Assembly (NCBI GenBank): GCA_002269645.1
Contig: NIVC01001597.1
Span: forward strand, 279,981 to 343,980
DNA: 64,000 bases
Source: Macrostomum lignano
Lineage: Eukaryota
Direction of reading: 5' to 3'
The position numbers and the translations under genes were made by a program. The notes under the pieces were generated by a model. That model was not told the DNA's origin and did not search any database. It saw only the letters and a list, made by a program, of their open reading frames with translations. Positions within the stretch are counted from its first letter, which is position 1. Each line of letters starts with the position of its first letter. Positions 1 through 33,125 of this stretch are shown piece after piece.

Positions 1-410
1 TGGCAACAGTAACCAAATGCTTCGTCTGGCTTCCTGCCTTGATGGTCATCAGCTTGCCGAGACAATTGGCTTATCTCCAAGCCATTGCGATCGTTCTCTT
101 CAGCCAGGCTTCAGAAAACTTGGTTTTGCGCTGAGCCTGAGTTGATGACGATGAACTTGAAGGCAAAGAAAAGCTCATGAATTTGCTTTTGGCTAAAATT
201 AGAAGCTTTTGAAAGCTTGAAGCATGCAATCTGAATTAAATACATGAGCGAGTACAAGTTAATCCTTTACATGTACGTTGTTGTTTCAACTACCGATTTT
301 TTAAAAGTCAATAATGAGCATGAAAGACAAGAAAAAAGGTCCATAGCTTCATTTTTGAGCGCAGAAATGACCTCGTAGTAGCGCAGTTGAGCAGAAAAAA
401 GTGGTCAAAC

Positions 411-529
411 TGCACCCAGGTGAACTGAAGCAATCCAGAGTTAAGTGTCTCGCTTAAGGACACAAATTGTTCCAAGTGGGTCGAGAATCGAACCCCTAAC
501 CATTCAGTTGTGAGCCTGACGCTCTAACC
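411..529 (-). mobile_element. tRNA-derived CORE-type SINE fragment
   Basis: Minus strand reads GGTTAGAGCGTC (A-box-like) ... GGTTCGATTC (B box), followed by GTGTCCTTAAGCGAGACACTTAACT, which resembles the CORE-SINE consensus (GTG.CCTTG.GCAAG.CACTTAAC). A degenerate second copy lies at 17321-17367. Confidence 0.6.
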
Positions 530-746
530 CCTCTTTAATGATTCTAATGATTCTTTCAAGAAACAACTCACTCCAGTCACTAGACTGTTCCTATTCACTA
601 GCCAGCACAATCTTTTGATCAGTAGTGCAGTAACTCTTTTCCCAGTGATTTATATACGTACCAATTGTGTCGAAACAATATACTGAATCATAATCCTATA
701 CTTAAATTTATATCCTATTTTCAGTTAAATTCCAACATTCAAAGAA

Positions 747-2153
747 ATGTCCAATCCAATTGTATATTTTGATATTGACATTGATGGCAAGCCAGCCGGC
801 CGCATAACATTTAAGCTCTATGCTGATATTGTGCCGAAAACTGCTGAGAATTTCCGCGCTCTCTGTACTGGGGAAAAGGGGATTGGTGAGTCAATGACCT
901 ACATTCCATATGAATGACCTATATGCCAGATGAATGACTCATATGACAGGTGAAAGACCCATATCTCAGGTGAAAGACCCATATCTCAGGTGGATGACCC
1001 ATATCTCAGGTGAATGACCCATATCTCAGGTGAATGATCCATATGACAGGTGAATGACCCATATCTCAGGTGAATGACCCATATCTCAGGTGAATGACCC
1101 ATATCTCAGGTGAACGACCCATATCTCAGGTGAATGAACGATATGATAGGTGAATGACCCATATGATAAGTGAATGATCCATATTACAGGTGAATGACCC
1201 GTATCTCGGGTGAATGACCCATATGACAGGTGAATGATCCATATCTCAGATAAATGACCCATATGTCAGGTGAATGACCCATGTCTCAGGTGAATGACCC
1301 ATATGACAGGTGAATGACCCATATCTCAGATAAATGACCCATATGTCAGGTGAATGACCCATATCTCAGGTGAATGACCCATATGACAGGTGAATGACCC
1401 ATATTTCAGATAAATGACCCATATGTCAGGTGAATGACCCATATCTCAGGTGAATGATCCATATGACAGGTGAATGACCCATATCTCAGGTGAATGACCC
1501 ATATGGCAGGTGAATGATCCATATCTCAGGTGAATGATCCATATGACAGGTGAATGACCCATATGACAGGTGAATGATCCATATGACAGGTGAATGACCC
1601 ATATGACAGGTGAATGACCCATATCTCAGGTGAATGATCCATATGACAGGTGAATGACCCATATGACAGGTGAATGACCCATATGACAGGTGAATGACCA
1701 TTCGCAATTCTCAAATGGCAGGCTGACAGCTGCTCACACTTAGCAGAAAATCAATCGCATTGAATCCCTTCAGGTGAAATCAGCGGCAAGCCGCTGCACT
1801 ACAAAAGCAGCAGCTTCCACCGGGTGATCCCGCAGTTCATGTGCCAGGGCGGCGACTTCACCCGCGGCAACGGCACCGGCGGCGAGTCCATCTACGGCGA
1901 GAAATTCCCCGACGAGAAATTCGCGATTAATCACAGCAAGCCGTTCCTGCTGTCTATGGCCAATGCCGGGCCGAACACGAACGGCAGCCAGTTCTTCATC
2001 ACTACTGTCAGTACTAGATGGCTGGATGGCAAGCACGTGGTATTTGGCGAAGTTGTCAGCGGTGAAGACGTGGTTAAACGCATGGAAAGTCTGGGGTCGG
2101 AGTCGGGTCGAACATCTGCCACGATTTTTATTGCTGACTGTGGACAGTTGTGA
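747..2153 (+). CDS. PPIA: Cyclophilin-type peptidyl-prolyl cis-trans isomerase (cyclophilin A-like, divergent-loop type), 172 aa, 2 exons
   Basis: Exon 1 747-885 ([46 protein letters not shown], donor G|GTGAGT); exon 2 1774-2153 (acceptor CCCTTCAG|) continues in frame as [29 protein letters not shown]...[14 protein letters not shown]...[16 protein letters not shown] at 2226. Confidence 0.95.
910..1700. repeat. 20-bp minisatellite (CAGGTGAATGACCCATATCT/GA) filling cyclophilin 1 intron
   Basis: About 40 tandem, slightly variant units read directly, all inside the 886-1773 intron. Confidence 0.97.
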
Positions 2154-2380
2154 CTGTTTTGTGCAGCTGTGTCTGTTACGATTTGTGAATATTTGCTTGT
2201 TTGAGTTAGGACTAGTAATAATGAAAATAAATCGGAATTATTCAATGTTTTGCATTTTGCGTTTTTTGAAAAACCAGAGTCCCGTTTCCTGATTGTTTTT
2301 TTATTTTTATCGTTAAACATTAAATGCAGAGATTCAGGAGTGTAGCTAGGGACCTTTTATATGGGGGCGTTAGCGAGGAG

Positions 2381-2766
2381 CGCCAGCACCAAGGGGCGCC
2401 AGCACCAAGGGGCACCAGCACCAAGGGGCGCCAGCACCAAGGGGCGCCAGCACCAAGGGGCGCCAGCACCAAGGGCGCCAGCACCAAGGGGCGCCAGCAC
2501 CAAAGGGCGCCAGCACCAAATGGGGCGCCAGCACCAAAGCGCGCCAGCACCAAATGGGGCACCAGCACCAGGGGGCGCCAGCACCAAGGGGCGCCAGCAC
2601 CAAATGGGGCGCCAGCACCAAATGGGGCGCCAGCACCAAGGGGCGTCAGCACCAAGGGACGCCAGCACCAAATGGGGCGCCAGCACCAAAGCGCGCCAGC
2701 ACCAAATGGGGCGCCAGCACCAAAGCGCGCCAGCACCAAATGGGGCGCCAGCACCAGGGGGCGCTA
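2381..2766. repeat. GC-rich minisatellite (GGGGCGCCAGCACCAA, 16-19 bp variants)
   Basis: Tandem units read directly. It generates the low-complexity ORFs at 2320-2810. Confidence 0.95.
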
Positions 2767-2914
2767 GCAGATTTAGAGACAACTTTAGCAACCATTTTTG
2801 CCTATACTAGCATATCTGCCCAAGCAGAAAATATTTTAAGCATATATGATAAGATTTCTATAGTTTGTTGAAATGAATCAGAAATCGTTAAAAAAGTATT
2901 GTTAATTATTGCAG

Positions 2915-4534
2915 GCCCTACCGTTTCGTTTGCTAAGCACCGCGGCCAATAAGGCTGGGCGGCCGCAGGTGTTCTTTGATGTTGCCGCCGATGGCAAATC
3001 GCTTGGCCGGGTTATTTTTAGTCTCTATTACGACAAGGTGCCGAAAACGGCCGAGAATTTTAGGGCACTGTGCGCTGGCGACAAGGGTGTTGGTAAGTGC
3101 TCATGTATCATGGAATGGATTGGTTCTGGGTGGTGACTGAGGCATCTGGGTGGTGACTGAGGCATCTGGATGGTGACTGAGGCATCAGGTTGGTGACTGA
3201 GGCATCAAGTTAGTGACTGAGGCATCTGGGTGGTGACTGAGGCATCTGGGTGGTGACTGAGGCATCAAGTTAGTGACTGAGGCATCTGGGTGGTGACTGA
3301 GGCATCTGGGTGGTGACTGATGTATCTGGGTGGTGACTGAGGCATCAGGTTGGTGACTGAGGCATCAAGTTAGTGACTGAGGCATCTGGGTGGTGACTGA
3401 GGCATCTGGGTGGTGACTGAGGCATCTGGGTGGTGACTGATGTATCTGGGTGGTGACTGAGGCATCAAGTTAGTGACTGAGGCATCTGGGTGGTGACTGA
3501 GGCATCTGGGTGGTGACTGAGGCATCAGGTGGGTGACTGAGGCATCAGGTTGGTGACTGAGGCATCAGGTGGGTGACTGAGGCATCAGGTTGGTGACTGA
3601 GGCATCAGGTGGGTGACTGAGGCATCAGGTGGGTGACTGAGGCATCAGGTGGGTGACTGAGGTATCAGGTTGGTGACTGAGGCATCTGGGTGGTGACTGA
3701 TGCATCAAGTTAGTGACTGAGGCATCTGGGTGGTGACTGAGGCATCTGGGTGGTGACTGATGTATCTGGGTGGTGACTGAGGCATCAGGTTGGTGACTGA
3801 GGCATCAAGTTAGTGACTGAGGCATCTGGGTGGTGACTGAAGCATCAGGTTGGTGACTGAAGCATCAGGTTGGTGACTGAGGCATCTGGGTGGTGACTGA
3901 GGCATCTGGGTGGTGACTGAGGCATCTGGGTGGTGACTGAGGCATCAAGTTAGTGACTGAGGCATCTGGGTGGTGACTGAGGCATCTGGGTGGTGACTGA
4001 GGCATCAGGTTGTGACTGATGCATATGAGTTGTGACTGAGGCATTAGTTTGTGACTGAGGCATCAGTTTGTGACTGAGGCATCAGTTTGTGACTGATGCA
4101 TATGAGTTGTGACAGAAGTTTCTATTCTAAAAGAAGTTTCTCTTCAACCTTCAACAGGAAAGAGCGGCATGCCGCTGCACTACAAAAGCAGCAGCTTCCA
4201 CCGGGTGATCCCGCAGTTCATGTGCCAGGGCGGCGACTTCACCCGCGGCAACGGCACCGGCGGCGAGTCCATCTACGGCGAGAAATTCCCCGACGAGAAT
4301 TTCTCCGTCCGTCACAGCAAGCCGTTCCTGCTGTCTATGGCCAATGCCGGGCCGAACACGAACGGCAGCCAGTTCTTCATCACTACAGAGAAGACTCCAT
4401 GGCTGGACGGCAAGCACGTGGTGTTTGGCGAGGTTGCCACAGGCGAAGACGTGGTTAAGGCTATTGAGAAGCTCGGTTCTCAGTCTGGTCGACCGGCTAA
4501 GAAAGTCACGATTGAGGACTGCGGCGAAGTGTAA
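2915..4534 (+). CDS. Cyclophilin 2, probable mitochondrial (CypD/PPIF-like) form with N-terminal extension; start codon not encoded locally
   Basis: Acceptor ATTATTGCAG|GCC at 2914/2915. Exon 2915-3092 encodes [23 protein letters not shown]...[17 protein letters not shown] (donor G|GTAAGT). Exon 4158-4534 (acceptor TTCAACAG|) encodes [21 protein letters not shown]...EDCGEV. The intron is at the same position and phase as in cyclophilin 1. Confidence 0.9.
3126..4111. repeat. 20-bp minisatellite (TGGGTGGTGACTGAGGCATC) filling cyclophilin 2 intron
   Basis: About 49 tandem units inside the 3093-4157 intron. Confidence 0.97.
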
Positions 4535-4896: not shown

Positions 4897-5988
4897 TCTG
4901 CGGCGCTAAAATAAGTGCCTGCGGCGCCAAAATGAGTGCCTGTGGTGCCAAAATGAGTGGCTGAGGCGGCAAAATGAGTGCCTGTGGTGCCAAAATGAGT
5001 GCCTGTGGTGCCAAAATGAGTGGCTGAGGCGGCAAAATGAGTGCCTGTGGTGCCAAAATGAGTGCCTGTCTGCGGCGCCAAAATGAGTGCCTGTGGTGCC
5101 AAAATGAGTGCCTGTCTGCGGCGCCAAAATGAGTGCCTGTGGTGCCAAAATGAGTGCCTGTCTGCGGCGCCAAAATGAGTGCCTGTGGTGCCAAAATGAG
5201 TGCCTGTCTGCGGCGCCAAAATGAGTGCCTGTGGTGCCAAAATGAGTGCCTGTCTGCGGCGCCAAAATGAGTGCCTGTGGTGCCAAAATGAGTGCCTGTC
5301 TGCGGCGCCAAAATGAGTGCCTGCGGCGCCAAAAGAGTGCCTGCGGCGCTAAAATGAGTGCCTGTCTGCGGCGCCAAATGAGTGCCTGCAGCGCCAAAAT
5401 GGGTGCCTGCGGCGCCAAAATGAGTGCCTGTGGTGCCAAAATGAGTGCCTGTCTGCGGCGCCAAAAGAGTGCCTGCGGCGCCAAAATGAGTGCCTGTGGT
5501 GCCAAAATGAGTGCCTGTCTGCGGCGCCAAAATGAGTGCCTGCGGCGCCAAAATGAGTGCCTGTGGTGCCAAAATGAGTGCCTGTCTGCGGCGCCAAAAT
5601 GAGTGCCTGCGGCGCCAAAAGAGTGCCTGCGGCGCCAAAATGAGTGCCTGCGGCGCCAAAAGAGTGCCTGCGGCGCCAAAATGAGTGCCTGTCTGCGGCG
5701 CCAAAAGAGTGCCTGTGGCGCCAAAATGAGTGCCTGCGGCGCCAAAAGAGTGCCTGCGGCGCCAAAATGAGTGCCTGTCTGCGGCGCCAAAAGAGTGCCT
5801 GTGGCGCCAAAATGAGTGCCTGCAGCGCCAAAATGAGTGCCTGCAGCGCCAAAAGAGTGCCTGCGGCGCCAAAATGAGTGCCTGCGGCGCCAAAAGAGTG
5901 CCTGCGGCGCCAAAATGAGTGCCTGTCTGCGGCGCCAAAAGAGTGCCTGTGGCGCCAAAATGAGTGCCTGCAGCGCCAAAATGAGTGC
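4897..5988. repeat. 20/24-bp minisatellite (GGCGCCAAAATGAGTGCCTG[TCTG]C)
   Basis: Tandem units read directly. It is the source of the repetitive ORFs at 4845-6063. Confidence 0.97.
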
Positions 5989-6920
5989 TATGTGCATTTA
6001 GGAATTTTAGAAATCATGTACATGTACTGTAGGATTCTTAGCTTTATCCCTCCCCCACTATAAAATCTATGGCGACGCCCCTGGGTTGTATATCAGAGAG
6101 GATTTCTATAGCAGAAATTTGTAAAAGACCTTGAGATGAAATTTTGCAGGTGTGCAAGCTACGAGCGTGTATTATGTAAATTATTAATTCATGTACACTA
6201 CATGAAGCTACAATTGTACATGGAGTCTGTGTATACAGAAGTGGTTGCGGGCTTGTATCTATTGGCCCACACGACTTCAAATACACGGCTAAAACTCAGA
6301 TTGCATCGATGGGGAAAAGAGAGAAAAAGCAGAAGAAAGAGCAGGTTGATGAGGTGGGGAGATTTGTACAATGAGCAGGTATAGCTGACTGCGCGGAGCG
6401 AGCGTACATTCTATAGGGAAGAATGTAGATTTGGGAGGAGATGACTGGAGAGGGATTATATAATAGCCCAAAGCGAGAGAGCAGCCCAAAGGACAGACAG
6501 GGACACAATTGGCTGGAAAGCAAACTAATTGTACTTGCAACGCTGTAAAGTTAGCTGTAAAAAGGCTGCGTTGCATTAATGACTCATGCAGCGCTTCTAC
6601 GAAAGAATCCACATCAACTAGCTAGCGTATTAAGTAACTAGAGCTCAAAGGCTATACCTTTGTGCCTGCAGTCGGATTCAGTTGTTCACATTGAACGCAC
6701 ATTGGGCTAGTACAGGCTGAATAAATAGTACTCAGCAGAAGCAGAAACGACTGTATTGTCTTTCCTGCAGCTCTATTTATTTGCACAGAAGAAATAATTA
6801 TAAAACTTAGAGGCAGAGAGAGACGACTCACTAAATATACACCCGAATAAGATAGATAGAACCGCGTGGACTCAAACAGACAGTAAGTCCTTGCGATAGC
6901 ACAATAGAATAATACATGCA

Positions 6921-9046
6921 ATGCGATTAAAACTACCGTATTATCCGCTGCTAGCGGCTCTGGCAGCTGGCTGGCTCATGGGTGCCCTGACTGTGCTGCT
7001 GCTACTGACTGAACGCGAGGTTGACCTGGTGCCACCTATGCCTGACGACGAGGCGGTCTGGCCCAGTCCAGCTATCGATCCCGGGAATTTCAACTGCAAC
7101 AACCGGCGCCCGAGGCCGCTGCAACCAACTGGCGACTTTGCCGCAGCGATGGCCTGGCAACGGATGCGTCAGAACGACTCGATTTACTATTTCGAGCGAC
7201 CGGGCAAGCTGCTGCCGATGCTGCGCCCGCTGTCCGAGAAGGAGGCCTCGGCCACCTACAGGGCCTCCGTGGCCAGGTCTTGGCTCGGCACCCAGACACT
7301 GGTGATCGCGGCCACTGTGAGAAATGGCATGCCTAACTTGGAGAACAGTTTGCAGAATATTGGCCGACTGCGGACTCTGTTCAGGCAGAGCTGGGTGCTG
7401 CTAGTTGAGAACGACTCTGATGATGGCACTAGAGAGAGGCTGCTGCGGCTGGCCAGGCTCGATCCCCGAGTCCGCGTGCTCGGTTGTGGCCAGCCTAACA
7501 GCAAATCGCCATGCCGAATGAACCAGAGATACCACAGCGGCTCGGCGCACAGGCCCGGCTCCAATATGGAGAGGACAATTGAGGAAGAGGTGCTCTTCGC
7601 CTTGCCGCATCTTTTATCCCGTAGGGAAAGGGTTGGTGATAAAAGATTCTGGGGTTTTTCACTCTAGAGGATGTTGAGGTCGGTCTCTTGATGCTATGGT
7701 GTCTAGAGTGATGCTATTGGTGTCTAGAGTGATGCTATAGTGTCTAGAGTGATGCTATGGTGTCTAGAGTGATGCTATTGGTGTCTAGAGTGATGCTATA
7801 GTGTCTAGAGTGATGCTATGGTGTCTAGAGTGATGCTATTGGTGTCTAGAGTGATGCTATAGTGTCTAGAGTGATGCTATGGTGTCTAGAGTGGTGCTAT
7901 TGGTGTCTAGAGTGATGCTATGGTGTCTAGAGTGATGCTATTGGTGTCTAGAGTGATGCTATGGTGTCTAGAGTGATGCTATGGTGTCTAGAGTGATGCT
8001 ATTGGTTTCTAGAGTGATGCTATGGTGTCTAGAGGGATGCTATGGTGTCTAGAGTGGTGCTATTGGTGTCTAGAGTGATGCTATGGTGTCTAGAGTGATG
8101 CTATGGTGTCTAGAGTGATGCTATTGGTGTCTAGAGTGATGCTATGGTGTCTAGAGTGATGCTATGGTGTCTAGAGTGATGCTATGGTGTCTAGAGTGGT
8201 GCTATTGGTGTCTAGAGTGATGCTATGGTGTCTAGAGTGATGCTATGGTGTCTAGAGTGGTGCTATTGGTGTCTAGAGTGATGCTATGGTGTCTAGAGTG
8301 ATACTATTGGTGTCTAGAGTGATGATTCACGGTCTCTAAAAAGTTGATGTCTATAAAGGGATGCTAGGGTCTTTAGTTTAGAGTTTGATAGGGTCTCTGG
8401 AGGGATGCTAGGGTCTCCAAGCGATGCTAAGAGGGTCTTTAAATCTCTAAAACTGTACATGTATTACAGAGGTAAGAATTTTTGTATCCCGGTTTAGATC
8501 GATCGCGGCCTGATCATGTCCGTCCTGCGCAACGAGTACCTGAACCACGCGTACAAACACCTGGGCAGCAGTGCTGACTTTCTATTGATAATCGATCCAG
8601 ATTTAGCCTGGCACAGCTGGAACCTCAACAGCATTCTGCAAGGTCTGTACTACTTCAAGACGCGGCCGAAGCTGCAGCAGATGTGCGCTAGCACAGTCAG
8701 CTTATACGATGGCAAACTGTACGACCCTTGCACGATTAACTTCTACAACAACAAGCGCTACGGCGAGGACACAAAGTATCCCTACGTAGACATCGAAAAG
8801 TCCATCTTAAAAGGGCCAAGGGACCTGCCACCAGTCAAGGCTGAGAGCTGTTTTCAAGCGTTCTCGTTCTACCGATTCTCTGTGCTGCAATCGCGGAGGC
8901 TGCAATACGAGAGGAGCCACGGCGAGTGGATGTGCGAGCACAACACCCTGTCCAGGCAACTGGACGAGGTGTACCTGGACCCGCAGATGCGACTTGGAGT
9001 GTCGGACAGTGCGAATTACTATGTCTTAAACAGGAATCTGTTTTAA
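6921..9046 (+). CDS. Type II membrane GT-A fold glycosyltransferase (CAP59/GT69- or GT2-like), about 405 aa, 2 exons
   Basis: N-terminal TM helix (YYPLLAALAAGWLMGALTVLLLL), proline-rich stem, LVIAATVRN and VLLVENDSDDGT motifs in exon 6921-7589. Exon 8498-9046 (acceptor GGTTTAG|ATC, phase 0) gives IDRGLIMSVLRNEYL...FLLIIDPDL (DxD). The donor GAG|GTGCTC is weak, so the exact junction is less certain. Confidence 0.75.
7693..8325. repeat. 20/21-bp minisatellite (GTGTCTAGAGTGATGCTAT[T]G) in glycosyltransferase intron
   Basis: About 30 tandem units read directly. Confidence 0.97.
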
Positions 9047-10301
9047 AGCAGATCGACTTTTCAATTTCCAGTTTTATTTAGTACCAAATTAAAAAAATAT
9101 TGGGCTCTGTCCAATGGTCCAAAGGAATTTAAGCGTCACTGAAAGAAATTTGTGTCTGGTCTGTACCTACCCACAGAATATTAAAAATAGACAAAGTAAC
9201 CTGTTGTAAGCTGAGAGTGACTGAGTGAGTGGCCCCTGATTGACTCCCTTCTTTTCTCTTCCTTCCTCTCTTTCCTTCTTTCTTCCTTCTCTCCACTTAT
9301 CATATTTCTCTCTCACCTGGCCCGTAGCCATTAGCTGGATTATTTATTTGGCCCTTGAAGTAAACATTTTGCCGAGCCCAGGCTTAAGTACATGTAAGGC
9401 GTAGTTCTGTTCCCTTTAGACACAGGCAGTCAAGGCAATTTGTCCGTCTTTTAATGAGCGACAAATGCAAAATATATTGTAAAATGATTAATCAATTCAA
9501 AGGAATCAAAAGTTCGAGAACTAGGATTCGCGTCATGCCACGGCTAACAATTGTGCTTGACACGCTTGCTTCATTTAGAATTTGAAGTAACTTGCACTGA
9601 ATGTAACTCGTGTAGCTATATTTGTTATTGTAAATCTCTGCTTTTAATGCGCACTGCCCTATTTGAGAACGCAATGCTTCCTTGAGGAAATCTGTATCAA
9701 AACATTGAAGTAACTGGTAAGACTGCTATTTAATTTTTTGAGTTTCAATACTCACAATAAATTAATATTGATGGCTATTAGAAGTTTGAATTTAATAAGA
9801 CAGGCCATGTGAATACATTGCTAATAATAAACTGTATATAGTGCAAAACAAATGATAATAACAATATGCAGACACCGCAAAGCAAAAAAGCAGCACATGA
9901 TGAGCAGCAGTTTTAACAACTTGAAGTACTACTTAATAAAAAAGCAAAGCTCAATAAAGCATATCATAGAATAAAGATTAATTATTGCACCAACCACAGA
10001 TGCTAGAATACCTAAATGTCACTCAAAAAATGCGCTAATCTAGTCTTTGTTTCAATAGCAACAATCTACTATGGCTTTCTACAAGCAGACGCATTAAATT
10101 AGCGTCATTCATCTTGCTTTACCCACTCTAGGCTGCATTAGGCTCGAAATTATTTAATCAGAAATCAATTAAGGACTGAAGATTGGGCCTAGCTATCAAG
10201 AAAAAGGGGGTGGCGCTTGAGACACCAGCCAGACCGATAAATAATTGGGATTTTCTCTTGCAAGCGTGTCTGACATTGACCTCTTTTCTTACAGCTATCT
10301 T

Positions 10302-10565
10302 ATTGGCTGAGCTAGATTGGGCCAGCCCCTAGACTGAGTTTCGTCCGTCTTGACTTCCCCTCTCTCCTTACTGCTCTCTCATTGGCTGAGCTAGATTGGG
10401 CCTGCCCCCCTAGGCTGAGTTTCGTTCGTCTTGACTTTCCTCTCTCTCCTAACTGCTCTCATTGGCTGAGCCAGATTGGGCCTGCCCCCTAGACTGAGTT
10501 TCGTCCGTCTTGACTTCTCCTCTCTCCTTACTGCTCTCTCATTGGCTGAGCTAGATTGGGCCTGC
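10302..10565. repeat. About 80-bp tandem repeat, 3.3 copies
   Basis: ATTGGCTGAGCTAGATTGGGCC recurs at 10302, 10381, 10461 and 10541. Confidence 0.9.
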
Positions 10566-11086
10566 CAAAGCCTGAGACCACAAATCCGAAAGGAAAGATT
10601 TCTAGCTGACACATTGAATTTCTGCGCAGATAGACTACTGAAAAAGAGTAGACGCTCAAATTTTTACCAGATTAAATTGCGAGTGACCATATCCAGTTTA
10701 TTCTGGTTTCTGTGACACCAAAGGAAGTACTTAATAAAGACAGGCGAAAATCAGCTATCAATAAAAAGTACATACAAAAAGAGGCAATACAACAATATGT
10801 TGAAAATTTTTCGCCTAATTCTTATTTAATGAAAATTATAAAGTGTCAAAAACTGCAAAACTATATTTATTATTATTACAAGGATGAGATTAAAAGCAGG
10901 CTGACAGCGACTGAAAAAATTAAATAAATAAACTAACACCGAGATTAAGGTAGGTTGAAGACAAGGACATGAACTATTAAGTGTAAATAAATAAGTCTAA
11001 TATAATCTGATCTGTATATTAGACATAAGTTTCTAGGGCATAGTGGATTTGGAGGCAAATATGATGGGGGATTAATGGGGCGGGTG

Positions 11087-11980
11087 GATCAGATGGTGGA
11101 TTAAAGGAGGGGCGGATCAGATGGTGGATTAAAGGAGGGGCGGATCAGATGGTGGATTAAAGGAGGGGCGGATCAGATGATGGATTAAAGGGGGGCAGAT
11201 CAGATGGTGGATTAAAGGGGGGCAGATCAGATGGTGGATTAAAGGGGGGCGGATCAGATGGTGAATTAAAGGGGGGCGGATCAGATGATGGATTAAAGGG
11301 GGCGGATCAGATGGTGGATTGAAGGGGGACGGATAAGATGGTGGATTAAAGGGGGGCGGATCAGGTGGTGGATTAAAGGGGGGCGGATCAGATGGTGGAT
11401 TAAAGGGGGCGGATCACATGGTGGATTAAAGGGGGGCGGATAAGATGGTGGATTAAAGGGGGGCGGATCAGATGGTGGATTAAAGGGGGGCGGATAAGAT
11501 GGTGGATTAAAGGGGGGCAGATCAGATGGTGGATTAAAGGGGGGCGGATTAGATGGTGATTGGTGGATTAAAGGGGCGGATCAGATGGTGGATTAAAGGG
11601 GGCGGATCAGATGGTGGATTAAAGGGGGCGGATCAGATGGTGGATTAAGGGGGGGCGGATAAGATGGTGGATTAAAGGGGGGCGGATCAGGTGGTGGATT
11701 AAAGGGGGCGGATCAGGTGGTGGATTAAAGGGGGCGGATCAGGTGGTGGATTAAAGGGGGGCGGATCAGATGGTGGATTAAAGGGGGCGGATCAGATGGT
11801 GGATTAAGGGGGGGGCGGATAAGATGGTGGATTAAAGGGGGGCGGATCAGGTGGTGGATTAAAGGGGGCGGATCAGATGGTGGATTAAAGGGGGGCGGAT
11901 CAGATGATGGATTAAAGGGGGCGGATCAGATGGTGGATTAAAGGGAGCAGATCAGATGGTGGATTAAAGGAGGGCGGATC
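11087..11980. repeat. G-rich 27-28 bp minisatellite (GCGGATCAGATGGTGGATTAAAGGGGG)
   Basis: About 32 tandem units read directly. Confidence 0.97.
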
Positions 11981-12293
11981 AAATCTCAGATTAGATCAGA
12001 AGGCGGACAGAAAATTGAAGCCAGGCCAGCAGCTGCAGAAAGGCGACTCTAATAAGCCAATAAAAATTAATTTATTAGACAAAGAAAATTTTATGTCACA
12101 TTAAGAAAACTATTCTTAACAGATAAAAACTGATAACAAACGAGCTGGCGTAATGCGAGTGAATTGCACAATAACTTGATATAAACAAATAACAATAAAG
12201 ATACGAAAGACATTAATAATAAGACATTAATGTAAAAACAACAGAGTTGCCAAGCAAACTGCAAACTAATCCAGTGACATTTCTAGCAATCAA

Positions 12294-14694
12294 TCACACC
12301 AGCAGCTGACGGGTGAGCAGACTTTTCCTTTGTTCTCTAAACTGATCGCCCACCTCGAAATCTTCTCTGCTGACTGAGTCATCGCCAGATTGGTCAGCCG
12401 GAGATGAAGGAAGCTGAGAAAATCGCTGCTGCTGCTGCTGCTGAGATGCCTCGTTTGAGCTGACGGATCTGCCAGTCGGGCCGAGCTGACATTCAAAGTT
12501 ATTATCAAATGGCTCGTTAATGGGGATATTCGATGAGAACGGGATATCACTAAATAGGGATATTTAAGAATGAGATATCTGTAAATGGCAATATTTGAGG
12601 AGAATGGGATACATGAGATACCGGTAAATAGGGATAATTGAGAACGGGATATCGGTAAATGAGGATATTTGAGAATGGGATATCGGTAAATGAGGATATT
12701 TGAGAATGGGATATCGGTAAATGAGGATATTTGAGAATGGGATATCGGTAAATGAGGATATTTGAGAATGGGATATCGGTAAATGAGGATATTTGAGAAT
12801 GGGATATCGGTAAATGAGGATATTTGAGAATGTGATATCGGTAAATGGGGATATTTGAGAATGGGATATCGGAAAATGGGGATATTTGAGAATGGGATAT
12901 CAGTAAGTGGGGATATTTGATGACAATGAGATATTGGTAAATGGGGATATTTGAGAAAGGGATATCAGTAAGTGGGGGATATTTGAGAATGTGATATCGG
13001 TAAATGGGGATATTTGAGAATGGGATATCAGTAAGTGGGGTATTTGAGAATGGGATATCGGTAAATGGGGATATTTGAGAATGGGATATCGGTAAATGGG
13101 GATATTTGAGAATGGGATATCAGTAAATGGGGGATGTTTGAGAATGAGATATCGGTAAATGGGGACATTTGAGAATGGGATATCAGTAAATGGGGGATAT
13201 TTGAGAATGGGATATCAGTAAGTGGGGGTATTTGAGAATGGGATATCGGTAAATGGGGGATATTTGAGAATGAGATATCGGTAAATGGGGATATTTGAGA
13301 ATGGGATATCGGTAAATGGGGATATTTGAGAATGGGATATCAGTAAATGGGGGATATTTGAGAATGGGATATCAGTAAGTGGGGGTATTTGAGAATGGGA
13401 TATCGGTAAATGGGGGATATTTGATGAGAATGAGATATTGGTAAATGGGGATATTTGAGAATGGGATATCGGTAGATGGGGGATATTTGAGAATGGGATA
13501 GCAGTAAGTGGGGGGTATTTGAGCAGAATAGGACATCCGAAAAATGCTTACAGTGAGTGAGTTATAGCTAGCCGACTCGTCCAGTTCGCTGATTGAGCCA
13601 ACACCGCCGCGGTTGCGCAGGGCTCGCAGGAACAAACCGGCCACTTGAAAAACGTTCTTACCAACGCAATGGTCACAGAGGACGCAGGCCAATAGCAGGC
13701 CCCAGCACAGTAGCACAGTCAGGCCACTGAGCGCTTGCAGAGCGGTAAGCAGCTGCCTTGGTTGCGGCTGAGTCCATGACACCGCCAGCGGCGGCAGAGC
13801 GACTGAGTGCAGCAGCAGACACAGCAGGCAGTGGCAGCGGTACATGCGCAGCTGATGGGGGGCCGAATTCGGGGACATTGCGTACTTTGCTTTAATTCCC
13901 CTAACAGCAGATGTCTAGCTGCCTTTGTTAGAAAATTTATATAAGAAAAAACTCACAGCAATGGTTCTCGAGGTTCGCGCATAGCTCAAAGCCAATATAC
14001 TTAATAGTAACATCTGAAGTAGAAGAGAAACAGATTCAGGTTCTGCCCACTCCGCGACTTTGGGGCGAGTGTTGTGACTTGTGAGTTGTGGATCGTAAGT
14101 CGCGAAAAAGTCGTCATAGAGTGGTTGTGTTAGGGCTTACTCGCTTCTGCTAACTCAAGTAGACTAAATAGAGTTGTTAAAAAATTGTCAAAATTCCTTG
14201 CATTGCCCCAATTTTGGTGCTCAAGCCCCCAATGAATGTGGAATCCCAAGAGAAGTTCAATTTGTGAGCGGCCTGCCTACTCCAAGTAACTCAAGACAAT
14301 CCGAATAAGCAGGTCTTATTCAACCTACCAAAATTGCGCACCACAATGGGAAGCCAAAGGCGCCTGACACATCAAACGCTGACCAATTAACGTTAACTGC
14401 AGTCGTATTAGCCTCACTAATCCGATTTAGTTGGTTAAAACTATTAGCCCGAATGGCAACGCTGGCAGACCAGAAGCTGAAGCCAATCAGAGCCAAACAC
14501 AGCTGCATCCAGCCTAGCAATGGAGGCACCCGCGATCCAACCCGAGACCCGATTATCAATAAGCTGTCATCGTCAATATCGCAGTCACCGCTATTGCTGG
14601 AACTGCGCCATAGCCGGTATGGCTGGTGCGACGACTGCTGCTGAGATGGCAGCTCGTGAACAGGCAAAAACAGGACATCCTCCGGCTGATGCTC
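12294..14694 (-). CDS. Four-transmembrane protein, MS4A/CD20-like topology, about 306 aa, at least 3 exons; 5' start not found
   Basis: Exons 14694-14329, 13914-13552 and 12485-12294 join in phase 0 with GT-AG sites (TTG|GTAGGT, CTAG|ACA, ACT|GTAAGC, GTCAG|CTC). Four hydrophobic segments (LLGWMQLCLALIGFSFW; GAFGFPLWCAILTSAVRGI; CLLCLLLHSVALPPLAVSW; LLTALQALSGLTVLLCWGLLLAC) and a polar Q-rich tail. The family call is tentative. Confidence 0.7.
12521..13522. repeat. About 31-bp minisatellite (GAGAATGGGATATCGGTAAATGGGGATATTT) filling an intron of the 4-TM gene
   Basis: About 32 units inside the 12486-13551 intron. Confidence 0.96.
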
Positions 14695-15169
14695 CTGAAA
14701 ATTCCAAATCTAAAAATCATTTCCAGCCAAAACAAAATGCAAACAAAGATGTAAAAGCACCTGAAAATTTTATAACCAAACTCAGTTTTTTTTTTAATTC
14801 CAGATATTTGAAAAGGCTCAAGATTCAATAGCAAGAGTCAAGATTCAAGATGAGACTAGGTTTTGGTAGATAGAATTAGAAATATATATATACAACAAGC
14901 TGTTGAAACCCGCGGATTTTGAGCCCAGGGAATTCCAATCCCGAAACTATTTTTGCATGTATTCTGAAATCTGAGGCCATACTCAAACAAAAACTTGTTA
15001 ATAGTTAGTAGGATAGAGGTAAACATGAAATGGAGTACAATCGTGTAAAATTAGGGTTTGAGGCAAACATTTGCTATTGTTGGCTCGGCTGGGGTGCTGC
15101 GCAGAATGTCAGACAATGGCAAACTCTGGCCTCTGTCTCTGACTCTCCCTACGTCCCTTGGATCCATTG

Positions 15170-15450
15170 CAACTTCTGTCTTCTTTTCTGTTCCCTCTTT
15201 TCTCTCTCGTCCCTCGTCTCTCCTCTCTTTTCTCTCGTCTCTGCTCTCTCATCTCTCCTTTCTTCTCTTTTATCTCTTCTCATTTATCTCTGCTCTCTAC
15301 TCTCTTTTTTCTCTCCCCTCTTCTCACTCCTCACTCTCCGCTCTCTCAACACTTCCCTCATCTCTCCTCTCTCTTTTTTCTTATCCTTTTCTCGCCTCTC
15401 ATTTCTTTTCTAATCGTTTATTCTATTCCTCTTCTTTCCACTCTCATCTG
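15170..15450. repeat. CT-rich low-complexity tract
   Basis: Almost purely pyrimidine on the plus strand. It produces the L/S/F-rich spurious ORFs at 15030-15565. Confidence 0.9.
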
Positions 15451-29379: not shown

Positions 29380-32300
29380 TTGAGCCGGCAGGAAGCTGCG
29401 CGGACCACTCCTGGAATCCCCGGAGTGGACATCCTGCAGCTTAACCTGCACCACTGCATCGCGGCCTCGACCAACCTGATGCAGGTGGCAAACTTTGCGA
29501 AACCGGGCATCATCCTACTCCAGGAGCCCTGGACAAAGAAAGGTAAGATTTCGAATATTCCTGCTGGTTTTGACTGTTTTCAAGACCCCCAAAACCCCAG
29601 AGCAGCCATTTTCGTTTCTACCCACCTCAAAGCTTGGCACAGACCGGACCTCTCTGACAGAGACCTCTGTGTCATTCAGTCCAACCACATTATCACCAAC
29701 CGCACGGTCATCATCGCCTCGATCTATATCCCTGGTGATGGCCCCGCGGTTCCACCCAACCTCACCTCCCTCGTGGACTACTGCTCTAACCGTAGGTTCG
29801 AGCTGCTGGTGGCGGGCGACATCAACGCTCACCACACCCACTGGGGCAGTAATACTTCCAATAGCAGAGGCGAGGAACTTCTTGCTTACATCTGCACCAC
29901 CAACACTGAGTTTTGCAACATTGGTGGAACCCCCACCTTTGACAACGGGCGATGGACGGAGGCCCTCGACGTTACCCTCGTCTCCCATGGCTTGGCTCCT
30001 TTAGTCAAGGACTGGGAGGTGTGGGACGAAGAGGAGTCTCTGTCTGACCATCGTTTCGTTCGTTTTCGTTTGCAATCCTCTTGCCCCAAGCCTCACATTC
30101 TGTGGAAAAGGAACGTCCGGAACACTGATTGGACGGCTTTCACGGAAACCCTGAAATGCCAGACAGATCAGCTGACTACCGTCGCTCCAACCACCTGTCA
30201 GGAAGTGGATGACCTTGCAGACTTGCTCAGCAAGACCGTCCTGACAGCCCATGAGGCTTCCTGTCCTCTTAAAGCCTACAAAGGCAAAAAATCCGCCCCC
30301 TGGTGGCACCCGGTGCTCGGATCCCTCCGGCGCAAGGCAAAGTGCCTCCAACGGAAAGCTCGCAAGAGCAAGGACCCAGCTGACCTGGCCGCCTATCAAG
30401 AAGCGATCCGCGACTTTAAGCGTGAAACCAGGAAAGCCAAGTCCGACAAATGGCGCCAATACTGCGCGGAGTTAGAAGGCACCCGCCCTACTTCGCGCGT
30501 AGTTAAGGCTCTCACCCTCGACAAAATGTCAAAGCTCTCAGTTATTAAAAGACCGGACGGCCGGCTCGCTGAGAACCCTGGGGAATCGCTGGACATTATG
30601 CTCACCAGCTCTTTCCCACGTGCCGCACCGCAGCTAGGCCCACCGGACCACTCTCCGGGCGGACAGATCCTGGCTTCGACCATCATTACTAGAGAGAGGA
30701 CGGCTCGCGCCGCAAAATCCTCTCCTTTTAAGTCCCCGGGTCCTGACAACATTTATCCTGCCTTCCTTTATGAGGCAGTTAAAAATGACAGGTTTCTCGG
30801 CCTCCTCTGCAACCTCTTCAAGGCCAGCATTACCCTCGGGTATGTGCCAAAAGCCTGGCAAGAGGCTACGGTAGTCTTCATACCCAAGCCAGGAAAGGGA
30901 GACTATCACTCCGCCAAAGCTTACCGCCCTATCAGTCTGACGTCCTTCTTCCTCAAACTGATGGAACGGCTGGTGCTCTGGCGCCTTCTCCTCGTTGAGC
31001 TGAGGAACTCCCCGCTCTCCCCTAATCAGCACGCCTTTCGTCCTGGACGTTCCATCGAAAGTGCGCTGCACGCCATTGTCGACAAGCTGGAGCGCGCCGT
31101 GCTTGGCAGTGGATACGCGCTATCGCTTTTCCTCGACATTGATGGTGCTTTTAACAATGTGCTCTTTGAAGCCTTTAAGCGAGCCCTGGAATCCCGGGGC
31201 ACGCACGATCACCTCACCCGCTGGATCATGTACATGGTCTCCCATCGTACTGCCACCTCGCACCTCCTGGGACACTCACGCTCCGTGGAAGTCCAGAAAG
31301 GCGGACCGCAAGGTGGAGTCCTCAGCCCGATCCTCTGGAACTTAGTCATGGACGAGCTGCTTTGCAGCCCGCATCCGGACCCTGTTCAGAAGGTCGGCTA
31401 TGCGGACGATGTTACCGCCACTGTGGCTGGACCATCGCCCCCGGTCCTCAGGGACCTCCTTCAAGCCTTCATCCACCGTGCCGAGCGCTGGGCACATAGC
31501 TGCGGTCTCAGGTTCTCTGAATCTAAAACCGTGGCTATCATGTTCACCAGCCGCCGAAACTGGAGGATCGAACCGCTCTCCCTCTACGGCAAACCTGTTG
31601 CCATGGAGAAACAAACTAGATGTCTGGGCGTCACCCTCGACCACAGGTTGAGCTGGACCCCGCACATCCAAACCAAAGCCCGCAAAGCTCTCGCGACTCT
31701 CGCGCAGATCCGCAGAGCTTTCGGTGCTACTTGGGGCCTCACCCCCCGCCGCCTCTGGTGGATTTACACTGCGATTGTTAGACCGGCCATCTCCTTCGCC
31801 GGCTTCATTTGGAACAGTGCCCTAGAGGTGAAAGGGGTTCTTGAGGTTTTAAATAGGGTGCAAGGCCGCGCTTGTCGAGCTATCATGAGCGCGGCTCCCT
31901 CAACGCCCTTCGCTGGCATGAACTCCTTCTTGGACATTCCCCCCCTCGACCTCTTTGTTAGAGGGGAGGCTATGAAAACCACCCGTCGTCTGCTTGACGC
32001 GGGTGTCCAAATCCAGAAGCAGTTTGCCTTCAGAAAGCGGAACCTCCGGCCGCACGGCGACCTCAGCCTGCGAGACCTGGAAGCAGCGAGAGGCCTGCTG
32101 ACCCTCTCGGACGGAATCCCGTCCACGCTCTGCCCCCCGCTCAAATTCAAAACCAGCATTCCACCACGCCATGAAGCGAGAGACAACTGGAAACCCCATG
32201 AAATCCACTGCTTCACTGACGGGTCCCAAATCAACTCCGCCTCTGGATACGGCTACTGCATCGTGTCTGGAGGGAGAACTGTGGCGACCTTCTCCCAACA

Positions 32301-33125
32301 CACCGGCACCTGCTCCACCGTCTTCCAGAACGAAGTTCTCGCCATCAGCTCCTGCGCCATGGAGCTGTACAATCAGCGCGTCTGGGGGAAGGAAATTACC
32401 CTCCACTCGGACAGTCAAGCGGCAATTCACGCCCTTGAGCGCACCACCACCTGCTCGCGTACAGTCTTCGACTGCATCGGGCAGCTCAACCGCTTAGGCG
32501 CCTCCAACAAGGTGTCCCTAAGGTGGATCCCCGGGCATTCGGGCCACCCCGGCAACGAGCTGGCCGATCGCCTGGCTAAGGTTGGCTCGACCGGTTCTTT
32601 TACTGGTCCCCTGCCCGTGGCCCCACCCCCATCGCTGTTGTCACCACTCGGATCAACCAGTGGGTGGCTTCTAAGCACAGGGAGAGGTGGGCTAACGCCC
32701 CCGACTGCCGGCAATCCCGCGCGGCTGTCCCCTGTCCCTCCCCCGCCCTTCGCAGGGCCCTGCTTGGACTCAACCGCAGGGACATCAGGGCGGTTACCAT
32801 GGCCCTCTCGGGTCATGGCTGCTTTGCCAGGCATCGTTACCTCCAGGAGAAAATCCGCAGTGAGGAATGCCCTTTCTGCCTCTCCGGTGTCGAGAATGCG
32901 GAGCAATTCATCTGTGAATGCCCCGCCTTTACTCAGGACAGGCTCACCTACCTCGGCCCAAACCCGGACCTCTCCGACGTTTTCAGGCCCGAGAATCTCT
33001 GCCAGCTCGTCCGCTACCTAAGGGCTACCGGGCGAGCGACAATCCACCTCCTGGACTCTCCGGAGGGGGACCGCGCTGCGGACGCCGGCGCCACCGGAAC
33101 TCCCTGCGCGACACCGCAGCACTAG
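29380..33125 (+). CDS. pol: LINE ORF2 polyprotein: AP endonuclease, reverse transcriptase, RNase H, C-terminal zinc knuckle; one frameshift near 32625
   Basis: APE motifs [24 protein letters not shown]; RT motifs [20 protein letters not shown]; RNase H motifs [30 protein letters not shown]. After a shift in the C-run at about 32618-32635 the frame reads LSGHG...CPFC...EQFICECP, to the stop at 33125. Confidence 0.93.

Follow-up and report, generated by a model that had tools for sequence, protein, structure and literature searches.

We analysed a 64,000-nucleotide (nt) stretch of the Macrostomum lignano genome (the window), which forms the final 64,000 bases of contig NIVC01001597.1 in assembly Mlig_3_7 (GCA_002269645.1) and is identical to the locus that we call L001. 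A protein search returned M. lignano entries that are 99% identical (P0005). Between positions 700 and 4600 of its plus strand lie two cyclophilin genes arranged head-to-tail (Table 1). Gene 1 starts at a genomic ATG of its own, shows near-identity to NCBI PAA47628.1 (P0123), and encodes a product with a full-length match to PF00160 (E = 4.5e-47). Gene 2, the subject of this analysis, lacks a start codon of its own in this copy and almost certainly obtains its AUG from the end of a trans-spliced leader.

Table 1. The cyclophilin gene pair and its elements, in window positions. A slash marks a splice junction; SL, spliced leader; CDS, coding sequence.
Feature	Positions	Strand	Remarks
Gene 1 putative 5' trans-splice acceptor TTTTCAG	718..724	+	22 nt 5' of the gene 1 ATG; matches the published [T/C]TNCAG
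Gene 1 CDS exon 1, own genomic ATG at 747	747..885	+	Cytosolic-type cyclophilin, Mlig023643 family; donor TTG/GTGAGT
Gene 1 intron, phase 1	886..1773	+	Mostly a 20-nt minisatellite (893-1699)
Gene 1 CDS exon 2	1774..2153	+	TGA stop 2151-2153
Gene 1 polyadenylation signal AATAAA	2226..2231	+	Sole AATAAA between the genes; kept in 5/5 paralogous copies
Intercistronic region / gene 2 outron	2232..2914	+	683 nt
In-frame TAA closing the gene 2 frame	2903..2905	+	9 nt 5' of the splice junction
Gene 2 trans-splice acceptor TTGCAG	2909..2914	+	Junction 2914/2915, phase 0; fits [T/C]TNCAG
Gene 2 exon 1 (Mlig001778 family cyclophilin)	2915..3092	+	59 codons + 1 nt; 0/59 codons ATG
Gene 2 N-terminal extension, codons A2-P18	2915..2965	+	Precedes the cyclophilin domain; putative mitochondrial presequence, given an SL-supplied M1
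Gene 2 intron, phase 1	3093..4157	+	Codon position as in gene 1; mostly its own, different 20-nt minisatellite (3125-4113)
Gene 2 exon 2	4158..4534	+	TAA stop 4532-4534

The coding frame of gene 2 opens directly behind a splice acceptor. Positions 2904-2914, immediately 5' of exon 1, read ...AATTATTGCAG/, and the codons in frame upstream of the junction are TAA(2903-2905)-TTA-TTG-CAG, with no ATG among them. An earlier note on this DNA had claimed that the frame begins right after a phase-0 acceptor without an in-frame ATG, and the stop codon at 2903-2905 together with the ATG-free exon 1 bears this out. The start of exon 2 is corrected slightly, to 4158, because the closing AG of the intron occupies 4156-4157. 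This open reading frame (ORF) is no chance occurrence: it leads on into a complete PF00160 domain (E = 2.7e-49; 167.9 bits, with a cut-off of 21.7), with residues 23-183 aligned to profile positions 3-158 of 159. The active site of CypA consists of R55, F60, Q63, N102, F113, W121 and H126; aligned to solved cyclophilins, gene 2 retains all of the active-site motifs. In the spliced ORF, Met first occurs at residue 65, in exon 2 (GKSGM); initiation at this codon would cost roughly the N-terminal third of the cyclophilin domain.

The spliced leader (SL) of the species could supply the missing codon. M. lignano has a single 35-nt SL, CGGTCTCTTACTGCGAAGACTCAATTTATTGCATG, which ends in ATG (PMC8629364). 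This terminal ATG is the only one in the leader, and no stop codon occurs in its frame. The published acceptor motif for the SL is [T/C]TNCAG, and the donor consensus is GT[G/A]AG. Joined to gene 2, whose exon side begins GCCCTACCG, the 3' end of the SL is predicted to form the junction TTATTGCATGGCCCTACCGTTTCG and to encode a 185-amino-acid (aa) cyclophilin, MALPFRLL...GEV, in which SL...TTGCATG/GCC stays in frame to the stop. Precisely such a phase-0 joining of an SL-derived AUG to the GCC at 2915 had been put forward in the earlier note, and it gains support from the ATG at the end of the SL, from the acceptor motif and from the NCBI models that start with ALPF. The same note had named the lack of an AUG-ending SL in the organism as a reason to abandon the idea; the M. 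lignano SL does end in ATG. Because Rfam found no family in the window, no SL RNA gene is located there.

Existing annotation of the gene 2 family points to the same junction. At 90% identity, the cluster around the M. lignano protein comprises six entries, among which PAA47629.1/PAA70350.1 and PAA80639.1 are 184 aa long, are labelled '5' partial' and have the N terminus exactly ALPFRLL. At three paralogous loci (L002, L003 and L004), the NCBI CDS begins with the base that directly follows the acceptor position and excludes three open codons upstream (L-L-Q), which requires the end of the transcript model to lie 0-2 nt from the junction. To place 5' ends, the Mlig_3_7 annotation drew on de novo transcripts trimmed of the SL and on peaks in SL-containing reads (TBONE; PMC5730564). 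Models that are 5'-partial and start with ALPF are the footprint to be expected of a trans-splice site, and as such indirect evidence for one. We also considered the N terminus of the NCBI model on this contig, P0005 (PAA66031.1, 202 aa), as an alternative start and rejected it. L001 contains a 4784-bp tandem duplication (about 5660-10443 and 10444-15227) that takes in gene 1, exon 1 of gene 2 and ~330 bp of the intron minisatellite. The two copies match perfectly save for shifts in minisatellite length; the duplication is of very recent origin or else an artefact of assembly, and positions 1-3421 of the window form the end of its second copy. Because of this duplication P0005 is a chimera: it starts at an out-of-frame ATG in exon 1 of copy a, reads that exon out of frame and is joined to cag/GTGTTC inside exon 1 of copy b. 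P0005 is an annotation artefact, which also shows that the pipeline had no proper start codon.

An SL-supplied Met would place a short extension in front of the cyclophilin domain. Structural-sequence matches begin at residues 15-19, and residues 1-17 lie beyond the fold. Residues 1-18 include three basic residues (R6, K14 and R17), two Ser/Thr and no acidic residue, the first of which is D23, so that the extension is basic and acid-free, as had been described before. The N terminus is too weakly hydrophobic for a signal peptide of the cyclophilin B type (compare P0027 and P0039). We consider import of the gene 2 protein into mitochondria to be plausible and slightly more probable than not. 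Assignment as an orthologue of PPIF (cyclophilin D) was rejected, since gene 2 contains a 7-residue divergent-loop insertion and spans 168 aa over residues 17-184, compared with 161 in PPIF and CypA chains. Gene 2 aligns without a gap across the loop (KSGMPLHYK) to the 1DYW/2MC9 type and is, as judged from this alignment, a divergent-loop cyclophilin of the CYP-3 and plant type. It is evidently a tandem copy of the neighbouring gene 1. In their second exons, genes 1 and 2 share an identical run of 129 nt (1790-1918 and 4174-4302) and are near-identical over about the first 230 nt, with diverged 3' ends, while the first exons are only 62% identical. This difference between the exons suggests a gene conversion tract between the tandem paralogues.

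The arrangement of the two genes raises the question of whether they form an operon. According to the criterion used for M. lignano, operonic genes are adjacent and on the same strand, their spacer after repeat subtraction is <1 kb, and the downstream gene is trans-spliced to the SL (PMC8629364). Genes 1 and 2 are direct neighbours on one strand. Their spacing, previously given as about 690 nt and largely minisatellite, measured 683 nt from the AATAAA to the junction, 394 of which belong to a 16-nt minisatellite (2376-2769) whose copy number varies between paralogues. The remaining 289 nt of unique sequence are well below 1 kb; SL use by gene 2 we infer. The older ML2 annotation contains UniProt A0A1I8GH40 (P0125), a 348-aa chimera, ...GRTSASI/ALPFRLL..., in which a cryptic donor in the last exon of gene 1 is joined to the acceptor of gene 2, and chimeric models of this sort are taken in flatworms to indicate a polycistronic precursor (PMC12582326). 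Co-transcription of genes 1 and 2 appears likely, by a small measure.

We propose the following mechanism for gene 2. A functional cyclophilin gene would have its first exon beginning at the trans-splice acceptor TTGCAG/GCC. Its pre-mRNA would most likely be a read-through transcript from gene 1, from which polyadenylation releases the gene 1 mRNA and trans-splicing the mRNA of gene 2. The 35-nt SL would be joined at 2914/2915, and its AUG, the first on the mRNA and in phase 0 with GCC, would act as the initiator. The product would be a 185-aa protein with a short N-terminal extension followed by the cyclophilin domain, and the 17-residue basic, acid-free extension would probably serve as a mitochondrial presequence. 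As a whole, this combination of SL-AUG initiation, a read-through pre-mRNA and a probable presequence is very probably the best explanation for gene 2.

Several points weigh against it. The AUG of the SL has G at +4 and U at -3, the latter making the context suboptimal. The model on this contig, P0005, starts elsewhere than at ALPF. Multi-mapping could have carried annotated 5' ends over from one near-identical paralogue to another; for this reason, the joining of the SL to this copy of gene 2 and the use of its AUG are what we infer from the sequence. An exact look-up of four MALPF... variants in a 15-billion-protein collection, which apparently does not include M. lignano transcript contigs, returned no match, and a search with the SL-encoded peptide VSYCEDSIYCM fused to exon 1 gave two weak, unrelated matches only. 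The collections searched yielded no RNA read, expressed sequence tag or protein across the SL-exon junction. The family names Mlig001778 and Mlig023643 were not found in literature full texts and supplements. As to the presequence, the amphipathic moment of the N terminus (muH 0.61 for an 11-residue window to 0.67 for a 14-residue window) was reached by 13% of shuffles (p = 0.13). As to the operon, no polycistronic transcript came to light, and a promoter may reside within the 289 nt of unique spacer.

The alternatives were weighed with the help of the paralogues. We aligned five assembled copies from the stop of gene 1 to the donor of gene 2. Exon 1 of gene 2 is 100% identical across all five, and the ORFs are intact in all paralogous copies. 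The triplet at 2912-2914 is CAG in the window, L001a and L004 (ttattgCAGgcc) and ATG in L002 and L003 (ttattgATGgcc), where the genome itself encodes MALPFRLL. The CAG/ATG change is an isolated dinucleotide substitution flanked by at least 50 identical bases on each side. The other adjacent double mismatches listed between the paralogues are mostly inside minisatellite arrays, and all of those inspected at 12.5-14.2 kb are in repeats or indel-rich stretches. Against this background the CA/AT change stands out, which does not decide between an artefact and real variation. Compared with its twin L002, contig NIVC01001247.1 (L003, around 5540-5560 and 7000-7500) also lacks single nucleotides in several homopolymers; one of these deletions, inside exon 1 of gene 1 (gtact-ggga), would shift the frame. 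They resemble errors of long reads that persisted in a duplicate haplotig.

The two states of the triplet provide the most serious rival explanation, according to which the window copy has lost its start codon and is non-functional, while the functional gene is the kind seen in L002 and L003, whose ATG is encoded in the genome behind a conventional 5' untranslated region (UTR). The mRNA would then read ...GTTAATTATTGATGGCCC, and the SL-like end of its UTR (TTATTGATG) would have been mis-trimmed as leader. L002 and L003 indeed read as this explanation requires, the genomic bases directly before the triplet are similar to TTATTGCATG, with which the SL ends, and the annotation has been propagated among near-identical copies. 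Nevertheless, CAG is found in three of the five assembled copies, and neutral decay would rarely produce an exact, in-phase consensus acceptor by an isolated double change. The intact ORFs in all copies also argue against a non-functional gene, and the ATG itself may be an imprint of polishing with RNA-seq reads. We therefore regard loss of the start codon as improbable.

A second such replacement concerns the putative gene 1 acceptor, where cctattttCAG/TTAAATT gives way in L004 to cctaTGCATG/TTAAATT (7481-7486), and TGCATG represents the last 6 nt of the SL. L005, a third cyclophilin, contains ttacATGCATG (2946-2952) 48 nt 5' of its ATG. The acceptor and ATG/GCATG states are contrasted by TTATTGATGGCCCTACC versus TTATTGCAGGCCCTACC and by CCTATGCATGTTAAATT versus CCTATTTTCAGTTAAATT. 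The strings in L004 and L005, together with the ATG in L002 and L003, suggest either that RNA-seq polishing left SL imprints or that a conversion was templated by cDNA. Mlig_3_7 was polished with Pilon on RNA-seq as well as DNA reads (PMC5730564), and reads retaining the last bases of the leader could have overwritten the acceptor. Alternatively, SL-bearing cDNA may have templated a conversion; in the GC-rich block at 28-34 kb, the plus strand of the window contains an uninterrupted 1213-codon ORF (29380-33021) with Exo_endo_phos endonuclease, reverse transcriptase and RNase H domains, which reads as an apparently intact retrotransposon lacking long terminal repeats, of the long interspersed nuclear element type. 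Matches to the 3' end of the SL in the window and loci were at chance (33 6-mers observed versus ~31 expected, with no match of at least 10 nt).

If the CAG/ATG difference is real, the same codon would be a genomic start in L002 and L003 and an SL-receiving acceptor in the window, L001a and L004. The path ATG <-> AAG <-> CAG would keep a start codon or an AG acceptor at each step. Because exon 1 is identical in all copies while only some of them carry the change, a real switch is mildly favoured, a reading that we hold tentatively and to which we assign somewhat less than an even chance. It would be a natural example of a gene handing its start codon to the SL, or taking it back, and a gene with an SL-donated start would become dependent on upstream transcription. 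If the difference is an artefact, RNA-seq polishing can write leader bases into trans-splice sites, and motif statistics and start calls would be affected genome-wide in Mlig_3_7. Since the mature mRNA would read AUG-GCC under a real switch, an artefact or a conversion, SL-AUG initiation gains support either way.

Another explanation is that a cis-spliced exon in the intergenic region provides the ATG and is joined to 2915. We scanned 2154-2914 for every ATG that reaches a phase-0 GT without a stop and scored the donors over nine consensus positions. Seven candidates were obtained, including MQRFRS (2324-2341) and MQRFRSVARDLLYGG (2324-2368), and segment 2300-2375 is well conserved among the paralogues. 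The donors, GTAGCT, GTTAGC, GTTTGT, GTCAGC and GTTTCC, are all poor: they agree with the consensus at no more than five of nine positions, compared with seven of nine for both real donors, and none of the seven candidates has GT[G/A]AG. Several candidates additionally cross the length-variable minisatellite, and the transcript-based models end at the acceptor, labelled partial, without such an exon. The exon from 2324, which the earlier note had named as a potential refutation, thus has a poor donor, and the statement of that note that no convincing upstream exon exists stands. A cis-spliced exon is very improbable.

Equally improbable, in our view, is a fusion protein with two cyclophilin domains, as in A0A1I8GH40, whose translation starts at the ATG of gene 1 and in which exon 1 of gene 2 is internal. 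Such a chimeric model does exist in the ML2-based annotation, and two-domain cyclophilins are known from other organisms (P0001). However, the cryptic donor ATT/GTTATT lacks GT[G/A]AG and is not present in the window copy, which has ATTTTT in place of ATT/GTT and reads ATTTTTATT. A stop codon of its own and a conserved AATAAA mark the end of gene 1, Mlig_3_7 is annotated with two separate genes, and chimeric models of this kind are recognised as an artefact that polycistronic precursors cause when flatworm genomes are annotated (PMC12582326). Translation of a trans-spliced mRNA from M65 or from a non-AUG codon, for which the U at -3 of the SL AUG might speak, is scarcely credible, because a start at M65 would remove the first two beta-strands of the cyclophilin fold at a residue that is Lys in paralogue P0121, exon 1 is an intact ORF identical across copies, and the SL AUG, with G at +4, comes first on the mRNA.

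SL-AUG initiation in gene 2 can be compared with known systems. To our knowledge, the start codons of divergent-loop cyclophilins with solved chains are all genome-encoded. C. elegans CYP-3 (PDB 1DYW), 2MC9 and 4HY7 are the best structural-sequence matches of gene 2 (E = 1e-80 to 1e-83, no loop gap); unlike gene 2, their solved chains have no presequence-like extension, and a few begin with other residues before the domain. Yeast Cpr3 is a mitochondrial cyclophilin with a presequence similar in length to the gene 2 extension. Like gene 2, Cpr3 and human PPIF are single-domain cyclophilins with a short basic N-terminal extension before the domain, whereas PPIF (structures such as 2BIT) and CypA lack the 7-residue divergent loop. 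In Schistosoma mansoni, more than 40 cDNAs need the AUG of the SL as a start (Cheng et al. 2006, J Biol Chem 281:733, as cited in PMC9851317). These SL-AUG mRNAs ('slORFs', PMC9851317) resemble gene 2 in that a flatworm SL ending in AUG is in frame with an ORF without its own start. Gene 2 differs in belonging to a free-living macrostomid with another SL, in being known from sequence, and in having paralogues that show ATG at the acceptor triplet. Trans-spliced genes and operons in M. lignano (Wudarski et al. 2017, PMC5730564; Ustyantsev & Berezikov 2021, PMC8629364) share with it the SL, the [T/C]TNCAG motif, the two-gene same-strand pair and a repeat-inflated spacer that drops below 1 kb after repeat subtraction. 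In contrast to the present analysis, these two papers do not discuss the SL AUG as a start codon, and GenBank labels the gene 2 CDS 5'-partial.

SL-AUG initiation is established in S. mansoni and suspected for Macrostomum, and gene 2 would accordingly be a well-supported further example, and a correction to the annotation, rather than a new mechanism: a clean Macrostomum case of the flatworm rule that the leader AUG can initiate. A '5'-partial hypothetical protein' in GenBank would become a complete, interpretable gene. Pipelines that trim the whole SL, including its ATG, would produce partial genes or wrong N termini, as on this contig.

Gene 1 might experience the opposite effect. Joining of the SL at 724/725 would place the SL AUG out of frame and create a 16-codon upstream ORF (725-772) overlapping the ATG at 747. 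If gene 1 is trans-spliced there, the leader AUG would be a hurdle for gene 1 and essential for gene 2.

Almost every intron and spacer has its own 16-31-nt minisatellite (893-1699, 2376-2769, 3125-4113, 4898-5988, 7689-8324, 11063-11981 and 12519-13523), with copy numbers that vary among the paralogues; the array in the gene 2 intron comprises ~50 copies in the window versus 212 copies (4.2 kb) in L002. On the minus strand, long ORFs without introns (226-530 aa) occur in pairs across 34944-59768 and make up approximately four tandem modules, with 22-88% identity between modules. The module ORFs had no Pfam match, and they belong either to a gene family specific to the lineage or to a repeat element of unknown type. 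Finally, tRNA-like T-arm motifs (GGGTTCGATTCTCGACCC) occur on the minus strand at about 440-530. ARAGORN detected no tRNA in the window, and the stretch had no Rfam match even at E <= 1; it may be the remnant of a tRNA-derived short interspersed nuclear element.

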